64,000 nt of DNA from Oopsacas minuta (GCA_024704765.1 JAKMXF010000354.1:481690-545689); one strand, 5' to 3'; shown: positions 15,980 through 57,543, counted from the stretch's first letter. Notes: generated by a model not told the origin, from the letters alone. Program-made: numbers and translations.

Positions 15980-16554
15980 CCCCTATATGTCTGTTGAGAG
16001 CAAGTCTCTAAGTATATTTCGATATTTCAACTATTTGTTTACTTTATATTCATAAAAACAACAATAAATTTACATATGAGAAATATGAAAATGCGAAATT
16101 TGGAATCAGCGTACTTGATTACCCCTATTGACTGTTGAGAGCAAGTCTCTAAGTATATTTCGATATTTCAACTATTTGTTTACTTTATATTCATAAAAAC
16201 AACAATAAATTTGCATATGCGAAACTTGAAAATGCGAAATTCAGAATCTGCTTACTTGATTACCCCTATTGACTGTTGAGAGCAAGTCTCTAAGTATATT
16301 TCGATATTTCAACTATTTGTTTACTTTATATTCATAAAAACAACAATAAATTTGCATATGCGAAACTTGAAAATGCGAAATTCAGAATCAGCTTACTTGA
16401 TTACCCCTATTGACTGTTGAGAGCAAGTCTCTATGTATAATTCGATATTTCAACTATTTGTTTACTTTATATTCATAAAACAACAATAAATTTACATATG
16501 AGAAATATGAAAATGCGAAATTTGGAATCAGCGTACTTGATTACCCCTATATGA
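15980..16554 (+). repeat. Tandem array of four near-identical 141-bp units (left arm)
   Basis: Units are directly alignable (CCCCTATTGACTGTTGAGAGCAAGTCTCTAAGTATATTTCG...) and differ by few substitutions. Confidence 0.95.
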
Positions 16555-16574
16555 CTGTTGAGAGCAAGTTTCTC

Positions 16575-16900
16575 AACCGGTTAAACCTGCTAAACCGGCT
16601 AAACCAGCTAAACCGGTTAAACCTGCTAAACCGGCTAAACCGGCTAAACCTGCTAAACCTGCTAAACCGGTTAAACCTGCTAAACCTGCTAAACCGGTTA
16701 AACCTGCTAAACCGGTTAAACCAGCTAAACCGGTTAAACCTGCTAAACCTGCTAAACCAGCTAAACCGGCTAAACCGGCTAAACCGGTTAAACCTGCTAA
16801 ACCGGCTAAACCTGCTAAACCAGCTAAACCGGTTAAACCTGCTAAACCAGCTAAACCTGCTAAACCGGCTAAACCTGCTTAACCGTCTAAACCGGCTCAA
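16575..16900. repeat. 9-bp minisatellite, consensus AAACCNGYT, about 35 copies
   Basis: Interleaved variants AAACCGGTT, AAACCTGCT, AAACCGGCT and AAACCAGCT. Confidence 0.95.
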
Positions 16901-18013
16901 CTTGCTCTCAACAGTCATATAGGGGTAATCAAGTACGCTGATTCCAAATTTCGCATTTTCAAGTTTCGCATATGCAAATTTATTGTTGTTTTTATGAATA
17001 TAAAGTAAACAAATAGTTGAAATCTCGAAATATACTTAGAGACTTGCTCTCAACAGTCAATAGGGATAATCAAGTACGCTGATTCTGAATTCCGCATTTT
17101 CAAATTTCTCATATGAAATTTATTGTTGTTTTTATGAATATAAAGTAAACAAATTTCAAAATTGAGGTAGAATCATACTTTCAACGGCTATCCTGGGGTA
17201 ATCGAGTATGCTGAGTCCGAATATTGTATTGTAAACAACATACTGTGAATATTTGTTTACTTTTATGTACATAAAGTAAACAAATTTCAAAATTAATCAT
17301 ATTTCACACCCTTTGCATAATATTCAAAATTATGCTTGAGATTTCCTTTAACTGCTAGTAAGGGGTAATCGTTATGTAGATTCCACTTTTCTCTTCAATA
17401 TATTTATTCCCAAAAGAGACTCGTATTGTTAATTAAAATTATTTCGAAGGCACTTACCATCGACATTGATTACTAATATCAAGCTAAGTAAAATCGTTAT
17501 AACACCCTATTTTAATTTGTTGGGAACTCTCTTTATCTATGTAAGATGTATTCCCTAAATGATAATTATTAATTAACTAATTTCTGAGAATTTTATTTAT
17601 GTAACTATTTCAAAATTTCAAATTATATTACAATTTGTATTTACCATATTTAATTAATTAAATAGATTCCATACATCGCTATTTGGTAATAGTTGAAAAA
17701 AGGTAGAATGAGACTACGTATGACAAGTATGATAATCTGACTTCCTATACGTAAATGTGTGATAGTCTTAAAGTTGGTCATATCACGATATTAAGAATTA
17801 CAATTGAAAATTTAGAATACAAAAAATATATAAAATAAAAAGACTAGCGACCCCATGGTTTTTCAGAGAATTGAATTATAGAATACAAAGGAAGGTATTC
17901 TGTTAATAAATAATTTCCAGAATTGAGTTCAAAGTTAAGAGCTCGTAATTCACAAAAAGTAAGAAATTAACGATTTTTAGAGGTTGATGCGGGTGATAAT
18001 TTTCAGTAATTAT

Positions 18014-38537: not shown

Positions 38538-41500
38538 TCAATCGGTTTTGAGAATATCCATAGTGCTTCCCAGCAATTGAATCAGTTGTTGCTCGTAATT
38601 CTCAAAGTTCCTCTTCATAATCTCCACGCAAGGCCCGAGGAGTCTTTCAAACGCTCCAATGTCAAGTGCTACAGAATTTATAAGATTGAAATTACGATAA
38701 CTAATAACTGAAATTTTGGAGAGAAATGTCCCTGTACAAAACTGTAGGCTTCTCCCTAAACTTTATGACATAAGAAATATGATTATTAATATTAATTTAT
38801 ACCTGCACACACTACTCTGCCTTGAGCATATACACTGGCTGCTCTAGGTTTGTTCACAAGAAGAGCAAGTTCTAAGAAAATAATTGACTACTTATTTGTA
38901 TACATCAACAATAACGAAACGAAACTCTAATTACAAACCTCCAAAATATCCCCCAACTGAGACAACCGATATATCTACCTCTTCATCACTACCTTCCTGT
39001 TTAAACATATAAATTGGGAAATACACTTTAAAATATTAAAATGATATAATTACCTTATCTCTCATACGAATGGCTACTTCACCTTCTACCATCAAATAGA
39101 ATTCAGTAGCTGTATCTCCCTACATGAATAGGACACAGTTAAACAAGTAAATAAATTGACGAGAAATATATAGATTTAATCGACCTGTTGGATTATAAGA
39201 TCTCCATCACTGTATTCCTCTCTACGTAGGGCATCTGCTATGTTCATACGTTCATAGTTCTAGATATTAGAATACGTAATACAATAGTAATTATTTATTA
39301 ATATCAGCTGATTATAATACTCACATCTAGTGATGATAGCATAGGGATTGAGACTAAGAATTTCTCATACATCTTTCTCTGTAAAAAAATATTCATTAAT
39401 AAAGAGTAGGGAAAATTTTATTATTACTCAATGATGTGTGTGTGTGTGTGTGTTGTATTGCGAGAACACAGTTATAAGAAATTTTTGCTTCTCCCAAGGG
39501 CGTTCTTATAAGCGATAACCACTGTACGTAGTATTCTTGTGTTTGTTTTACGAATACAATGGATAATCATAAATCATTGAAATGGTACCCATCTGTCGAA
39601 ATGAGATAAACTAGTTTATTTACGCTTTTAACTAAAAGGAGTGAAGAATAAACTTAAATCAGAATTTGATTATAAATTTGAGTAAACATCCAGGTGTACT
39701 TTCAAAGATGAATTGTATCTCGCGACCCCCGATTTGAGAAACACTGGTATAGAATATCTGGGCTGCAGAATGAATGTTTTTCCAATGTGAGAGAGGATTA
39801 TACATGAATTCATCGTAGTGAATGCATTCTTTTCATAAAAATGTATTGTTCTAGAAATACGCACTACATTCCTAACTTACGTAATATTTGATACACACAA
39901 TAGATACATATTAGAATAATTACCTTTTTAGAAGCAGATTCCATCACAATTCTCCTGAATGACATTCTGTCCTAAGTTATAAATTATATTATTATAGATT
40001 CTTAACAATAAGAATGAATAAATATCATAAAATTGTTCTATGGACACGATGCGAGTTCCATTCAATACATATACGTATCCACTTAATCGGGTCAGATGGC
40101 CTTGTCTAAATGTAATCCTTTTAAGCAGAGTCTACTGTATTAGTATAATATAATATATTGTACCAGAGCCCAGAGAGTTCCAGCTGTTTTAGCAACAACT
40201 GTTGCTTTCCTAAAGAAAAGAATATAATTTCAATTATGTCATTCAGATATCATTAAAACTAATAAAAAGTGTAATTATAACATACCTTGGTGTGTTGTAG
40301 AGGAGAGCAAGTTCTCCAAAACTACCTTCATTATCATAATGTGACACCTGTGTAGATATTATAACACTAATTCATAATACAAATGTTAATTTTAGATAAT
40401 TTTAAGTCAAATAATTCATCTCTCAATAGGAATTACAGACAAGAATAATGCTCTCACCAATTTAGAAGTACTCTTATCATTTATGTAGACTTCATAGAAT
40501 CCTCTATATGATAGGTAATTATAACAATACTATGAAGTTAAATATCTATCCAAACTTCACAATTTGCATCTACTACTCCTATAAACGGAGTTCACCATAT
40601 GCTCCCCTGAAAAATCTTAGTTTTGTCCGTGGGTCAAAGTGTAAAATCGAATTTGACTAGTCATCTATAGAATATTCAAATAACCTTACTTCTCAATAAT
40701 ATAGAAGAAATCTCCGTCATCTCCTTGCTCAATAAGATGGTCACCAACTGCTGCCTGTTATAAAACACACAATTAAAACTAAACATTACATAATCAGTGC
40801 ATAAATGTAAATTGTTCACAAACCGTTTTTTCAAACATTGCATCTAATACAAAAGTTTTCTGCTCCTAAAGTGATACAAAGAATAAATATAAAGAATACA
40901 CAAGTATATTAATAATTACTCACAGGCTCTAAATTCTTAAATAAGAAACAATTACTGAATGCTTCACATAGTCTCCCTCTCTGTTCATCTGACTTAGGAT
41001 AACAGATCTACCAAATTTTATAATATAAATATTTTCAATACAACCTATTAGATACAAACTTATCTGAACCTTTTGTAGTTCATCTTCGTCTGATGGTGAA
41101 AAAGGCTCAGCAAATACTAACAAATATATAAATACATAACACATTACTCTTATTAACGGGTAATTAAATTAATAGAGAATGCTATACTTTACAATACCTG
41201 AACATCTCCTGCCTCTGTCAAACCGAACAGGAGTGGCTGCTTCATCTGTACAATAAGAGCGTATTAGTTTAATATGAAAATATACATACATACGCAGTAT
41301 AATTTAGAAATATATCTATCACACAACCAAAGCTGTGGTATCCGTATGTGACCGTCTCCAGCATAATATATCTACTATTATACACACCGTACAAAAATTT
41401 AACATTCAACAGCTATCGATTCCCTCGAACGATAATCAAAATGAACAAGTGATAATGTTGAGAGTTCCGTGACAATACACAATACGTATATATTATACAA

Positions 41501-50414: not shown

Positions 50415-51659
50415 GAATAACTCTAACGAGAGACTGGTTCTTATTTTCAAGAACAAAAGAAATTCTAGCTTAGCAATAATTATTTGAATAATGGGTTTTG
50501 TCGGGGAAAAATACGTATTTCGAGCCACTACTTGCTTCGGATTATTTACAAAACCTTCTTAAACATTGCTTAGTATCGTCATAGAAAGTGGTGTTACCTA
50601 ATTTTTGTGTGCGATTATCCCAAGGGCTACCAAATTAAAATATCTTCTCCTCCAATAAATTAAATAAAGCTATATCATTCTAACAATTCCCATTTTTAGT
50701 TTATGCTGAGCTAATGGTAGGACACTATGGCTCTAGTAGCAGCTATCCACGTGTGTCGCTTAAGAGAGTATGGCACAATTGGAGCAACATTCCTAAACAA
50801 ATTAGTAGAAAACTATTATTTCGTTTTGGACTGATAGAAGTTCAGGAATAATAATAGCCACGTATCCGTGTTAAAATTGTAATACGTATAGTTATGTGAT
50901 ATAATAATATTATATTTGCGTATTGAACCTTACTGCTAGTCACTTCGTCTCTAGAATACAAGTAGAATGAATAGCAACCTTCCACCACTCCAAGATAACA
51001 TAAGTGAATTTGCTTACTGCCAAATGGCTCTTTATCTTGTTAGATTTATGGCTCCACACTGGTACATATTTATATGTATTTCAGGAATAATTATTTATTA
51101 GATCTTATCATCAGGCCATTAAAAATTTATTCTACACAGAAATAAACAAATAATGTTTCGGACCACATTTTGTTTCAATGTAGATTAGTCAATTATCTAT
51201 ATTCCCTGATTTTTGAAATAAAATATCCAAATATGTAGAAATAGTATAGTACCGTATTTCCATGAATAATCGAGAGGAATACGCATCAATTGACTGCAAC
51301 AAATTAGGATTAGTTTCCAAAAATTATTTGTCTTTTCAAATTGTAAAAAATTATACGAAAAAATGGAAAGAATATGCGCCCATGCGGTTATTCAGGTAAA
51401 AAGAATATTAGTTTAATGATTAAGATTAGTTGAAAAACGTAAGATAAACTACAGCGAGAAATGAGAATTGAAGAAAAAAAGCAATAAAAATTGCATAAAA
51501 TATTTAGATGATAAATTCTGCGTTGAATGATTTGACTAATAAGTTGGGCCTTACAGCCAATAGAAATAAATCAAATTAGAATTGAAAGCAGCGCTTTAAG
51601 AGAGCAAGTATACTAATGTCCCGCTACAAATCTCGATATAAATTCTTCAAGTGCTAGTA

Positions 51660-53325
51660 CTATGACTGAGAGGATGGAATGATCTTATTATGCACCCTGG
51701 ATATGTGAGTAGTGAGCACGTACTTCCGGTAGAAAGATTTGAAACAGTAGTGGCATTGGAAGGGCCGCTCACCGCTATGCACTATTAAGTGACGTTTGAG
51801 TCCAGTATTAGACTTGTAAGACCTCTCACAGATGGAGCAATGGAATTTACGTTCTGACAGATCGGTGGTAGTGTTCTTGCTGTTGAGTGTAGGTTGGCTT
51901 GCTGTAGCGAAGTAAGTGGGAGGAGAGCTTGCTGAGTTGGAGGCATCTGTCTGTTGGATGTGAGAAGTAGGGAGAATGGAGTATACTTGAGGTCTATCTG
52001 GTAGACTTTGTACTGAATTAGACGAGGGATCTATTAGAGAGTTAGGGAGACTCAGGAAGGCCTGAGTATTAGGGCGAGGGTGAGGCTTGAATACACCTCG
52101 ACATGATTTACACTGGAAATGGTTTTTATTAGGTGTATGTGGATGCATGTACTCACTAGTCAGGGATAGGTTAGAGAAATTATTCTTGAGTGGAGGAGTG
52201 AAGGGAGAACTGTGTGGAGAGTTCCCTTCTCCAACTACATGCACACTCATAGGGGAATTGAGTGTAGTAGTAGGTGTGTTATTGGGTGTACTATGCTGAC
52301 TATTTGTAGTGAGAGCTATTGAACTCTGTAACGTGAAGTTGATTGGAAGATTAGGAATAGAAGTGTTGAGAACTGGAGAACTCATTGGTAGTATATTCGA
52401 ACTGTTTGTACTAGATGTTACATTTAATAAACTGTCTTGACCTAAGAAGGTAAATGGTGGACTGGTAGGTAGAGTATGAGAAGAGTTGATTACATGTGAG
52501 TTATTGTCTGATTTCACAATATTATTCGAGTTTAGGATAGTAGGGCTATTTGTCTTTGTGGGAACGGCTCGGTTGCTACAAGGAAGGTCAGTCAAATGAG
52601 AATCTTCATCATCTGATGGAAAATATTTGTTTGGGGGACTATGAAATGCTTCTGGGTGTATACTCACTTGATATACGTTTGCTAGAAAAGAAATTTTGTT
52701 ATTTTCTGTAGCTAAACCTGAACAGAATAATTGTGAGCAATATTTTCAGAATTGCAGTTATTATGCAAGTAAAGTATCGAACAAAAACTTTATAAGAATA
52801 ATATACGCCTAGTATTCATAAAGTTTGTAAAATAGAATTACAACATTATTAGCAATTTATATCCGGGAAAATATTAAATTTTCATTTCAATTTGCCAAAC
52901 TTATTGAATACAGTAACTTCTGTATATTTGTTTGTTACGTAAATAATACGTATATGTACGTTGTGAATGATAAAATGTGAATAAAAGTGGAATTACAACT
53001 TGTGCAGAAAGCATTTGCCTTAAATAATATTGCATGTAGTAAAATCCAGCAGATTCGTAAATTCACAGAATTGAGACTCACCTGTATCAGAAACTACTTC
53101 TCCATCTCCACATATTTCATCTGAGTCTTCTGAAGATCTGAATATAGAATTCACCCTCACGGTTTCATACAAGACCCTGTCCTCCTTTGATTGTAAGTGC
53201 ATGTAATATTCAACTGCAAAGTCCACATAGTTGGAGGGCCGTGCTTTCAATGCAGATACCACGAACTCCTGCACCATATCGTGTAATATTAGCGGAATTT
53301 CCATCACAAATTTCTTGGTGGCCAT
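51660..53325 (-). CDS. RII-type dimerization/docking domain + C2H2 zinc-finger protein (gene A), exons 53082-53325 and 51660-52717, 433 aa
   Basis: Exon 1 encodes IPLILHDMVQEFVVSALKARPSNYVDFAVEYY and ends G|GTGAGT (phase 1). The TTCAG acceptor at 52718 (alternative at 52682) joins in frame to an S/T/P-rich ORF ending in two C2H2 fingers with an HSGERPF linker. Confidence 0.75.
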
Positions 53326-55663
53326 TTATAAATCAGACTTCACAAGAATCAACTTGGTCTACTGCAACATGAAATATGTACTAGGTGGAGAATATGAACA
53401 CAGTATTAGAAAGACTCCTATATATGCCCAGTTTATGGATTGTATGCATAAATGGCGGCAATATGAGAGTAGCTGAGGTTAGGAGGAATGGCGTAATCGA
53501 AACTGTTAGTGTCTCAAATAAGCTGCAGAAGCTTGTGCTAGTGCCTTTGAAGTAAAATGGTAGAATTGTGTAATTATAATTGATTCTGTTGTCATGAGAA
53601 TGTATGTTTGTACCATCAAAATATGCTGGTATACTAAAAAGTAAGGATTCACCCGCAAATACGCTCTCACAAGTGCTAATGAGAAGTTATGAAAATGCAA
53701 TAGTTGGTTATATTTTGACACGCTGACTTGGGTGGTCGCGCGCGTGTCGTTTCGAAAGTGGAAAGTAATGGAGAAAAGCTTCTACTGACAATTAATGAAT
53801 TCTTTTCTTTCTCCATTTGCTGTTTTTCATTTAGGAATCAATCTGACTGGCATAGAAGAATCCCGCTTTAGGTTAATGCCAGACGATTCTGAATTTCTGT
53901 ATATTCAAGGAAAGAAAGCTGCAACATTGTGTTACCTGGAATGTGGAATCAATCCTGATACTTTGATTTATTGAAATAATGTAGTTCATTCCATATTGCT
54001 AAAATTAGAAAATCTAAAGCCATTTAAGAAAAGAGAAATTTTTACTAAAAAGTGTTGTAGGCGAAATTGCACTAGTATTTCGTGAATTACGTCAAAACAA
54101 CCAAAGCATCAACACGCAATCACTTACATGTTCTAGAAAGTAAACAAACTATTTATAAATCATATCAAATATGTCATGTCGCAATCAATAACTAGAGTGA
54201 TTGCTGCCCAAATTTCATTTATTAACAATTAAGTAATAATGTCTGAGAATTACTGTCACATAGTTAGCATGATATTACTAAGATGAACATGATAAAAAAA
54301 TTAAATATTTATATGCTGTCAGTGTCAAAGTGTGTATTTGTATAATCTATTGAAGTAATTAGGAGAATGTTTCTCAACATCTCACGAGCTATTCCTACAA
54401 TTATAGTTATTGGGAGCCCTCGTTCATCATCTAAGGTAATTAAACGAAAGATGAAGTGTCATTTTACATGGTATCTGTCAAGTATGAATGAACACAGGCA
54501 GCTTTGAGCAAAGCGCGAATAATGGTTAGAGGTGAATATTGAAACTTGTCTATTAACTTATCGATATTGTTATGCTATCTTTGACCACGAATGTTCACGT
54601 TGGGATCAAATTGTTCCTGATCTTTAACAAAATCATGTGACCACAATAAGTTGCATAATCACAGGCGTAGTTGAAAATCCCCCTAACTATAAGACCCATA
54701 TATCGTTGTAAAGTAATGTCGGAAATTTCGAATCACATGAGTAATCTCAATGATATTTCTAATGATAGGATTTTTCCATCATCATTAGGGCGATAACAAA
54801 CTTAAAGACAACTCTACATGTGTCGGCGGGCGGCATTTCACTAGCATCAGCTCATTATTTAAAATTATCATATACGTAATCAAAATTTCTTGATTCATGG
54901 CAAATATAATACACGGAAAGTCAAATTTGATTTGATGCCGTACATGACAGTTTAAACAGTAACGACGAAATATAACTCATCTCTATATGTATTTTTCTTT
55001 CAATATTATATATTTCATGTGTGGCTGCATAAAAATAAGATAACGGTGGACAATACAATATGCCACAACTAGTAAGTAGACAACAACAGCAGTATTTTAT
55101 ACTTTGATCAGAAAACTAAAATTTAGTTCAGAAATCGTCGTAGAATTTTATCAGAAAAAGGAATAATTAATAAAGGTTTCGATATCCCTAATCCAAATTA
55201 TACTTTGAGTTGAATTTTGATCAGAAAACGCTACATATAGGGGCTGGTTTCAGCTAATCCATAGAAATTCAACAACTCCGAAATATCTTGAGACACTATT
55301 GCAATAAGTAAGGGATAGGGATATTCCTTTCCAATCTCCATATCTAATTTCGATACTTCTGATCAGAGTTCTAATTTTCTGATTCCTCCGCGAAGCAGGT
55401 ACATCCCGGTATCGAGTTGAGAAGCGACCAAGCAAGCTTATTTTGCTTGTTCAGATACCAATTAATAAGACAACGAAACAATTAATAATATCCGAAATAT
55501 TCGATATAATCAATTCAAAAATACCAAGCTAAGCTATTGCATCATTCTCCAGTTTAGCTAAATCATATTTTCAGATCAACTTCAGAATGTATGATTCGGA
55601 TTTGAGGCCTTCAACTAACTCTAATCTTTCTTCTACATATTTTTCGAAAAGTGATTTTGGTTC

Positions 55664-56632
55664 CTACTGAGAGGCCTGCACATGTGTATAGTAATGGAGA
55701 CGTAGAGAAGAGAAGTGTTTGAACATGATATCGCATTCAAGACATTTGAACAGTGTGACTCTCCCATTAGGTTGAGAAATAATATTCTTTGTGATGATAG
55801 GTTGAGGAATAATATTGTTTGTGATGATAGGTTGAGGTGTGGGAGACTGTGTCTTATCCACAGCAATGTGTACGATATGTTGAGAATAATGGGTATGGTA
55901 CTCAAGTGCATCTCTGAATATGATACCACAGCATTTACATACTAATCCTTCCTCGAGGTTAGTGGAACAAGCGTGATTGAAGTGCTGAGATAATTGGGGA
56001 TGTCCGTTGTAAGTTTTTGTAGTGAAAGGGCGAGCTGAGGCAGGGGGAAGAGAATTGAGGACAAGTTTATGATGAGGTGGGGTACCAGGAGTGCTACACG
56101 GAAGATGGAGTGAATTATTAGACTCGGATTTCTCCGGTATTGATGGTGTTGTAACAAGTGAGCTAACCTCGTGAGAAATAGCAGGGTCTGTTACGAACAC
56201 GATTGCTCGGTTAGAGGACTGGTAGAGAGGTGTCTCACAGGTGCGGTACAGGAGTGTTCCTGGAGGAACAGACGCCTCATCACTCACAGAAGTCAGCTGA
56301 TAAATACCGTAAGGTGGAGATGGAGTTGTGAAGTGATGAGGCTGAGGAGAACTACTTATAAAATCACTATTCTGAGAGATATAACTCTGTTCAGGAACTG
56401 TTTGTTGTTTACTTGCGATACTGCTACATACATGCTCCCTGGGAGTACCAACTGTAGGACTCATTCTCCTCTTCCGTGTACATTCATTCCTATTAGCCCC
56501 TTCCTTCAACTTCTTATGATACTCAACTGCATAATCTATGTAATTATCAGGCCGTTCACATAGCGCTGAAGTTATGAAATCTTGAATCATATCTTGCAAT
56601 GCAGTTGGTAGAAGAATGGGAAATTCACACAT
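55664..56632 (-). CDS. RII-type dimerization/docking domain + C2H2 zinc-finger protein (gene B), single ORF of 322 aa
   Basis: LPTALQDMIQDFITSALCERPDNYIDYAVEYH at the N-terminus, an S/P/T-rich linker, and fingers CKCC..FRDALEYHTHYSQH and FKCLEC..FKHFSSLRLHYYTH. Confidence 0.85.
   Translation of the reverse strand: MCEFPILLPTALQDMIQDFITSALCERPDNYIDYAVEYHKKLKEGANRNECTRKRRMSPTVGTPREHVCSSIASKQQTVPEQSYISQNSDFISSSPQPHHFTTPSPPYGIYQLTSVSDEASVPPGTLLYRTCETPLYQSSNRAIVFVTDPAISHEVSSLVTTPSIPEKSESNNSLHLPCSTPGTPPHHKLVLNSLPPASARPFTTKTYNGHPQLSQHFNHACSTNLEEGLVCKCCGIIFRDALEYHTHYSQHIVHIAVDKTQSPTPQPIITNNIIPQPIITKNIISQPNGRVTLFKCLECDIMFKHFSSLRLHYYTHVQASQ
55768..55828. repeat. 30-bp tandem duplication inside gene B (PQPIITNNII/PQPIITKNII)
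   Basis: AATAATATT(C/G)TTTGTGATGATAGGTTGAGG occurs twice in tandem. Confidence 0.85.
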
Positions 56633-57543
56633 TTAGAATTATCCAAATACAAAATATTATGTCGAAAGAAAAGCAGTAAAACAAACAAACAAAGCTATGA
56701 TCCTACTACAATGTTTTATACTAGAGCAATGTTCACCCGCCTTGCAACTAAAGATGTTGGAATGGCATCCTTATACAGCCATTCTTTGTGAGAAGTGAGT
56801 TTATGTAACACCAGTTATCCTCTTTGCCTAGCATCATAAATATAAAGGAAATTTGATATGGAAGTAACCGCGGAACTATAGAACAATTAATTGATCTCGT
56901 AATGGCAACTATTTATAGTGTATAGAAATATAGTTAAAGTGGAGGTTGCATCATCTCTCCAGTCACTGATAGTTTCAGTTAAATGCTAAATAATTGTTTT
57001 GAATTCATACATAACATATCTCCTCACCGATGAATCACACTTGCAATGAGTGAAAGCAGTCAAATAGCAATGGATCGATTGTGTGGAGTTCTTTGTTCTG
57101 TAATAGTAAATATCATTATCAAATAATGACAGCTCAGACTGGTATTCAAGAATGAATTTTCATGAAATAATGTGTAATACTACACTTTAACTTATTTAGG
57201 TTGTAATTACCCAGCTCAATTGTTTGAAATAATGATACAAGTTATCTCTCCTCATAGATTCTAGACATTTGACCATTCTCATGTTCAAGGTTAACTTAGA
57301 ATAAATGCATCCAATTATTTCACCATAAATAATTTGATAGTATTGTAGATCCATACATATACAAAGCTACCGAACACACATTAAGACGATGTTTGTAAAT
57401 GATAGACAAGTCCTGACAATGTATACAAGGGAAATATGATAGTATTCTGTAGATGAACGTTCAACTAATGAAGAAATTGGATAGTTTAGTTGGTATATAA
57501 TATAAGGTTATATGTAATGAGAATATATTAGTAGAATAAATAA

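Follow-up and report, generated by a model that had tools for sequence, protein, structure and literature searches.

A two-exon gene of Oopsacas minuta that combines an RII-type dimerization/docking domain with C2H2 zinc fingers

Proteins with C2H2 zinc fingers have repeatedly gained N-terminal self-association or effector domains, among them BTB, SCAN and KRAB. In the BTB/POZ proteins with few fingers, such as Tramtrack and the GAGA factor of Drosophila, and in the SCAN-ZNF proteins, a self-association domain is followed by a disordered linker and by C-terminal C2H2 fingers. Two fingers alone have low DNA specificity, and in this layout dimerization makes up for the short finger array; BTB, for example, dimerizes two-finger proteins such as Tramtrack for the reading of composite sites. 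The gene of the glass sponge Oopsacas minuta that we describe here, gene A, has the same layout, but its N-terminal domain has a fold other than those of the BTB, SCAN and KRAB proteins, namely a dimerization/docking (D/D) domain of 45 residues.

The D/D domain of the PKA type II regulatory subunit (PF02197; structures 2HWN, 2IZX, 2IZY and 1R2A) is, like that of gene A, a helix-turn-helix of ~40 residues at the extreme N-terminus, and the domains of gene A and RIIalpha are 35-39% identical in structural alignments. Unlike PKA RII, gene A lacks both the RRxS inhibitor site, which is absent from its public protein model (P0001), and the cyclic-nucleotide-binding domains, for which the Pfam model cNMP_binding gave no match in gene A, so that it is no kinase regulator. 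DPY-30 (COMPASS/MLL; 4RIQ) is a nuclear D/D-type helix-turn-helix dimer that docks an amphipathic helix of Ash2L. It appears at ranks 35-50 among our Foldseek matches (TM ~0.5, 18% identity), but Pfam places it in another family, and it lacks a DNA-binding domain. The R2D2 proteins (SPA17, ROPN1, CABYR, RSP7/RSP11) are, like gene A, carriers of RIIa that are not kinase subunits; unlike gene A, they are ciliary or flagellar, contain IQ or other modules and have no C2H2 fingers. We found no description in the literature of RIIa together with C2H2 fingers.

The window, that is, the whole stretch of 64,000 nucleotides that was analysed (GCA_024704765.1 JAKMXF010000354.1:481690-545689), contains gene A on its minus strand, and the features of the locus are compiled in Table 1. 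A second gene, gene B (56632-55664, 322 aa), lies 2.3 kb upstream on the same strand. Like gene A, it has an N-terminal D/D domain (46% identity over 46 aa) and its C-terminal end in C2H2 fingers. Unlike gene A, it has no intron, and its fingers are ~45 residues apart, with no Krueppel linker and with poor Pfam scores, whereas gene A has a conserved half-finger and a canonical tandem pair. Outside the D/D domain, the two genes share one generic finger only, which aligned at a probability of 7% when the profiles of gene A exon 2 and of gene B were compared.

A protein search with the exon-2 product gave seven further proteins from ENA assemblies, 45-64% identical to the query, and these pointed to eight loci in seven related assemblies. 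Most of the loci share the gene order of the window (SelO, an NHL-repeat gene, gene B, gene A, SPC25, ANKLE2 and HAUS3), and genes A and B are neighbours in most of the related assemblies. At one locus (L002:3975-4799, assembly ERZ20067936) the gene B orthologue is on the strand opposite to gene A, whereas the two are co-oriented in the window and in the other loci; this looks like a local inversion. Another assembly, ERZ25072740, holds two gene A/B loci, L003 (ctg112251, 2x coverage) and L001 (281x), with gene A introns of 2071 nt and 68 nt, respectively, which suggests that two species or haplotypes were present in the sample. Elsewhere in the window, positions 16547-16922 hold a repeat array of ~370 nt that is open on both strands, with (SRF/NRF/SWF)n as the translation of one strand and (LNR/LNL/LNQ)n as that of the opposite strand; it is probably microsatellite-like and not a gene.

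Table 1. Coordinates of gene A, its domains and the PKA regulatory subunit gene in the window.
Feature	Position	Strand	Remarks
Probable 5'-UTR splice acceptor AG	53381..53382	-	56-57 nt upstream of the ATG; one X4 contig, weak
Coding exon 1	53082..53325	-	ATG at 53325; 244 nt = 81 codons + 1 nt, phase 1
RII-type dimerization/docking (D/D) domain	53176..53304	-	residues 8-50 (MEIPLILHDMVQEFVVSALKARPSNYVDFAVEYYMHLQSKEDR)
Intron	52682..53081	-	400 nt, GT..AG, phase 1
Coding exon 2	51660..52681	-	2 nt finish the Ala82 codon, then 339 codons; stop 51662-51660
Conserved half-finger (HFQCKSCRGVFKPH)	52080..52121	-	residues 269-282; F-x-C-x2-C-x3-F
C2H2 zinc finger 1 (FHCSICERSYKSNTGLKRHLIVH)	51777..51845	-	Pfam zf-C2H2, motif scan
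Linker SGERPF	51776-51759	-	precedes finger 2; last Phe codon common to linker and finger
C2H2 zinc finger 2 (FQCHYCFKSFYRKYVLTTHISRVH)	51690..51761	-	zf-H2C2_2, motif scan
True multi-exon PKA regulatory subunit (RII) gene	~41831-38553	-	exon 1 at 41831-41547

The N-terminal domain and its relation to RII

The first 50 residues encoded by exon 1 are MATKKFVMEIPLILHDMVQEFVVSALKARPSNYVDFAVEYYMHLQSKEDR. The Pfam RIIa model scores gene A exon 1 at 18.7 bits (E 1.3e-3), below its gathering cut-off of 22.4 bits, and six of the eight orthologues match it weakly at E <= 0.1, the best value being 1.1e-4. When an HMM of exon 1 was built from the eight orthologues and compared with the PDB, it found 15 distinct sequences, all of them PKA RIIalpha or RIIbeta (best E 2.3e-5), with matches that span the entire D/D domain, and tblastn searches with real R subunits reached gene A exon 1 at E 1.6e-8 to 9e-7. 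The D/D domain that the original prediction had placed here, and that it had proposed to check with domain HMMs, is thus recovered as profile-level homology to the RII D/D domain, while the single-sequence Pfam score stays under the cut-off.

An HMM of the D/D domains of genes A and B, run against 1.84 billion representatives, matched 157 proteins at E <= 1e-3, many of which are exon fragments without the downstream parts. Genes A and B rank first, followed by RII-like N-termini with RRxS inhibitor sites and, lower in the list, by cNMP-binding R subunits and tandem-RIIa/IQ proteins. Besides six giant tandem-RIIa proteins and ~120 short fragments, the matches include 20 longer proteins, which were scanned with Pfam; RIIa was present in all 20 (above the cut-off in 18), and zinc fingers were present in none of these 20. 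The proteins P0031, P0055, P0074, P0078, P0091 and P0142 are giants of 2607-5043 aa with two RIIa-like N-terminal stretches at about residues 81-125. A word-index protein search with residues 1-52 of P0001 returned the query alone, the exon 1 of its relatives being short ORFs outside the length range, and the ESM Atlas look-alikes of P0001 were generic C2H2 clusters only (structure TM ~0.2, model pLDDT 0.47).

The AF2 model of the 52-residue domain (pLDDT 83) consists of two helices, at residues 12-28 and 33-51, with a four-residue turn between them. Compared with the PDB by Foldseek, this predicted model gave 27 top matches that were all RIIalpha D/D domains, with TM values of 0.6-0.8 (0.61-0.72 by query), 32-39% identity and rmsd of 0.6-2.9 Å; the E-values were weak (0.03-0.25) because the domain is tiny. 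These were followed by axonemal and radial-spoke RIIa chains, DPY-30, RIalpha and SPA17, the D/D domain of the last ranking 42nd in the list. In the profile alignment, the gene A positions that correspond to Ile3, Ile5, Leu9, Leu13 and Leu21 of RIIalpha stay hydrophobic. M8 and I10, which precede helix I, align with Ile3 and Ile5 and are conserved. From the sequence profiles and the predicted fold, we conclude that the N-terminus of gene A belongs to the RIIa superfamily as a diverged representative that comes closest to the RII type.

The RII gene of the window includes an ORF at 41169-41291 with an RII-type RGRRCS site, and its cNMP-binding exons extend down to ~38553; its D/D domain is ~37% identical to that of gene A. 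A tree calculated from 43 columns of 62 D/D segments puts genes A and B in one clade (support 99/96) on a long branch, and the RII gene of the window falls outside this clade. Within the reach of its 43 columns, the tree supports a single capture of the D/D domain followed by the duplication that gave rise to genes A and B, and it says little about the donor of the domain. Local exon shuffling from the neighbouring RII gene was also considered as a source of the D/D domain; it finds no support in this tree of 43 columns.

The likeness to RII bears on what the protein may do. The D/D domain could dock AKAP-like helices, or heterodimerize with the RII encoded 10 kb away, so that the protein would be tethered or sequestered at PKA scaffolds; if this were true, cAMP scaffolds would be linked to gene regulation. 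Both the sequence and the predicted fold place the domain closest to the RII type, which is the AKAP-binding one, the conserved M8 and I10 occupy the positions of RIIalpha Ile3 and Ile5, which are required for AKAP binding, and a true RII gene lies on the same strand. However, the D/D domains of genes A and B form a long-branched clade of their own, separate from the RII of the window, and their identity to RII of ~37% argues against heterodimers. Moreover, no AKAP partner was identified, and the related D/D domain of DPY-30 can dock nuclear partners that are not AKAPs. We regard a role in anchoring as rather unlikely, and we favour a nuclear, DNA-binding role.

Zinc fingers and the proposed mode of action

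Two Pfam models recognise the C-terminal fingers, each in two stretches: zf-C2H2 (27.8 bits vs a cut-off of 25.2) and zf-C2H2_4 (28.4 vs 27). The C2H2 motif scan places the fingers at 51839-51777 and 51755-51690, and the double-domain model zf-H2C2_2 matches across the linker at E 3.9e-8. As had been anticipated, the pair is canonical: CSIC..H...H and CHYC..H....H are joined by HSGERPFQC, and both fingers pass the Pfam cut-off. The linker, in the context H-SGERPF-QC in gene A, reads (S/T)GERP(F/Y) in all orthologues and is TGEKP-like.

The mid-protein CKSC that had also been reported is present, within FQCKSCRGVF. The conserved half-finger HFQCKSCRGVFKPH resembles a C2H2 finger in its first half but is without the usual pair of His; the Pfam scan did not recognise it as a finger. 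It is nearly invariant, with C, K, S, C, F, K, P and H invariant in the eight orthologues. The AF2 model of the exon-2 product, calculated with the eight orthologues, has a pLDDT of 38 and gives no information on the half-finger. The ~270 residues between the D/D domain and the fingers are of low complexity and probably disordered, with a few conserved short motifs, among them the CxxC half-finger. Neither of the gene A exon products has a Pfam match to BTB, SCAN or KRAB, and no nuclear localisation signal was identified in the gene A product.

Most non-kinase RIIa proteins (ROPN1, SPA17, CABYR and RSP7/RSP11) are structural components of cilia and flagella, and gene A might likewise encode a structural protein of this kind, for instance in collar bodies, whose fingers would bind protein or RNA and have no part in transcription. 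The radial-spoke and axonemal RIIa chains among the structural matches after RIIalpha are in line with such a role, as are the many ciliary-type tandem-RIIa/IQ proteins among the database matches. Several observations make it improbable, however. The linker is of the canonical TGEKP-like form, and among solved structures the finger pair is closest to arrays bound to DNA (ZNF568, CTCF, Aart, ZBTB proteins and Zif268). The recognition helices, KSNTGLKRH in finger 1 and RKYVLTTH, are invariant across the eight orthologues. Finally, the Pfam scan of gene A contains neither an IQ motif nor any other ciliary module.

Taking the domain analyses together, we consider it moderately probable that the product of gene A is a nuclear DNA-binding protein with two fingers, dimerized through its D/D domain. 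Going by what is known of the RII domain, the D/D domain is predicted to pair two chains in an antiparallel four-helix bundle of the X type. The dimer would then present two times two fingers to DNA, for a composite site of ~12 bp, and an amphipathic helix of a partner protein may also dock in the groove that the D/D dimer forms.

Exons, splicing and conservation of the locus

The minus-strand ORF 53325-53020 (ATG at 53325, stop at 53020) has 101 aa when unspliced and contains the predicted IPLILHDMVQEFVVSALKARPSNYVDFAVEYY of the D/D domain. Its donor, ACAG/GTGAGT (the slash marks the boundary), has its GT at 53081-53080 and leaves an exon 1 of 244 nt in phase 1, so that ORF and donor agree with the original prediction. 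The product of exon 1 comprises the D/D domain and an acidic tail that ends in ..VVSDT. The zinc-finger ORF lies downstream of exon 1 on the minus strand (52667-51660), and the product of exon 2 is a Ser/Thr/Pro/Asn-rich region with short conserved motifs, followed by the zinc fingers.

Contigs from four public runs of one sample were compared with positions 51200-57100 of the window. Three of the runs resemble genomic DNA in that their contigs are long and their depth is flat. The fourth, run X4, whose kind is not on record, is RNA-like by its contig pattern: it has 326 short contigs over 51200-57100, and its word depth, a poor gauge of expression in contigs, is high on both gene A exons and on gene B. 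One joint contig of X4 omits 52682..53081 (400 nt) and reads CT..AC on the plus strand, which is GT..AG on the gene strand; it is a single contig, and its shorter side has 28 letters, under the 31-letter rule of the tool. In the same run, the gene B ORF (55534-56715) is covered by many short high-depth contigs, and gene B appears to be transcribed too.

The product obtained with the 400-nt intron has 421 aa and agrees in every letter with the NCBI entry P0001 ('Zinc finger protein [Oopsacas minuta]'), which a protein search with the exon-2 product also returned (421 aa, 100% identity). Across the junction, P0001 reads ..GEVVSDTANVYQVSIHPEAF... The gene had been thought to be hidden across an intron, but its two-exon model was already public. 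The precomputed Pfam list of P0001 holds zinc-finger families only, so the RII-type N-terminus is unlabelled in the public record.

The orthologous loci show the same arrangement. In all eight, the finger ORF is preceded by a D/D exon with the end ..VSDT and the G/GT conserved, and the junction ..VSDT/AN(V/I)(Y/F)QV.. is found with its phase-1 position kept, across introns of 68, 77, 81, 288, 371, 400, 452 and 2071 nt. Each orthologue intron ends in YAG immediately before (A)N(V/I)(Y/F)QV, and the products have 421-439 aa. Because the X4 joint, the public P0001 model and the conserved junction of the orthologues agree, the acceptor is the one at 52683-52682, which reads tttcttttctag/caaacg and lies 36 nt downstream of 52718.

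The in-frame splice from the D/D exon to the zinc-finger ORF had thus been foreseen correctly, and a check for splicing over 52718-53081, as had been proposed, finds the exons linked by the X4 joint; the acceptor is not 52718, however, and the intron of 364 nt and the protein of 433 aa are replaced by 400 nt and 421 aa in the X4 joint, in P0001 and in the orthologues alike. We rejected the 364-nt intron on these three lines of evidence, and the 12 additional codons of the 433-aa model are intronic. Use of acceptor 52718, as the main or as an alternative form, is very improbable. The sequence ttctgttcag/g at 52720-52718 is a plausible acceptor that keeps the reading frame, but the sole joint seen in the contigs is the 400-nt skip, the public model has a 400-nt intron, and all orthologues join AN(V/I)(Y/F)QV directly, three of them with introns of only 68-81 nt.

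That two separate genes, one for a 101-aa D/D-only protein and one for an independent zinc-finger protein, were wrongly joined is hardly credible: an unspliced X4 contig spans 52654-53111 and prokaryote-style gene calls on the related assemblies give the ORFs separately, but the depth of that contig (58) is at the intergenic level of X4 against 1234 for the spliced joint (depth being a poor measure), a conserved ATG is missing from the exon-2 ORF and conserved coding starts exactly at the acceptor, and the exon end and phase are kept despite introns of 68-2071 nt.

We conclude that gene A is real and transcribed, and that its two coding exons give a 421-aa product. Values of dN/dS, determined by the Nei-Gojobori method for pairs with unsaturated synonymous sites, are 0.05-0.13 for the D/D domain and 0.04-0.06 for the fingers, with 0.17-0.66 for the exon-1 tail and 0.25-0.40 for the middle region. 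The D/D domain and the fingers are under strong purifying selection, and the low values in both terminal domains indicate that they are maintained together in one reading frame.

At the 5' end of the gene, one X4 contig leaves its match to the window at 53382, right at a polypyrimidine-AG, and continues for 11 further letters (minus strand, AAAAAACTTAC). A search for these 11 letters across the whole window gave no match, and the upstream splice partner was not found there. The loose end could correspond to an intron in the 5' UTR that follows a distant first exon, or to a trans-spliced leader; a trans-spliced leader of ~37 nt is described in the genome paper of the glass sponge Aphrocallistes vastus (PMC10282587).

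Significance of a D/D domain on a zinc-finger protein

Each of the two domains was known, as was the public gene model; what appears to be new is the RII-type D/D domain as a putative type of self-association domain on a zinc-finger protein. Members of the family of D/D-zinc-finger proteins were seen in Oopsacas minuta and in its syntenic relatives only, where the family consists of two tandem paralogues that are strongly conserved. The domain, with 50 residues, and the finger pair, with 60, are easy to express, which makes dimerization, docking and DNA specificity directly testable.

If the reading of gene A as a D/D-dimerized DNA-binding protein is true, the RII-type domain would be a further independent solution to the position that BTB, SCAN and KRAB occupy in other C2H2 proteins, and it would place in a new cellular setting a fold whose other known roles are in PKA anchoring, cilia and COMPASS. 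More speculatively, and with low confidence, the proteins of genes A and B might constitute a class of transcription factors specific to glass sponges, in which the D/D dimer docks AKAP-like helices or those of chromatin co-regulators. A module of kinase anchoring and cilia would in that case have been recruited as the effector and oligomerization domain of a transcription factor, and in this syncytial animal gene control might be coupled directly to cAMP/PKA scaffolds.
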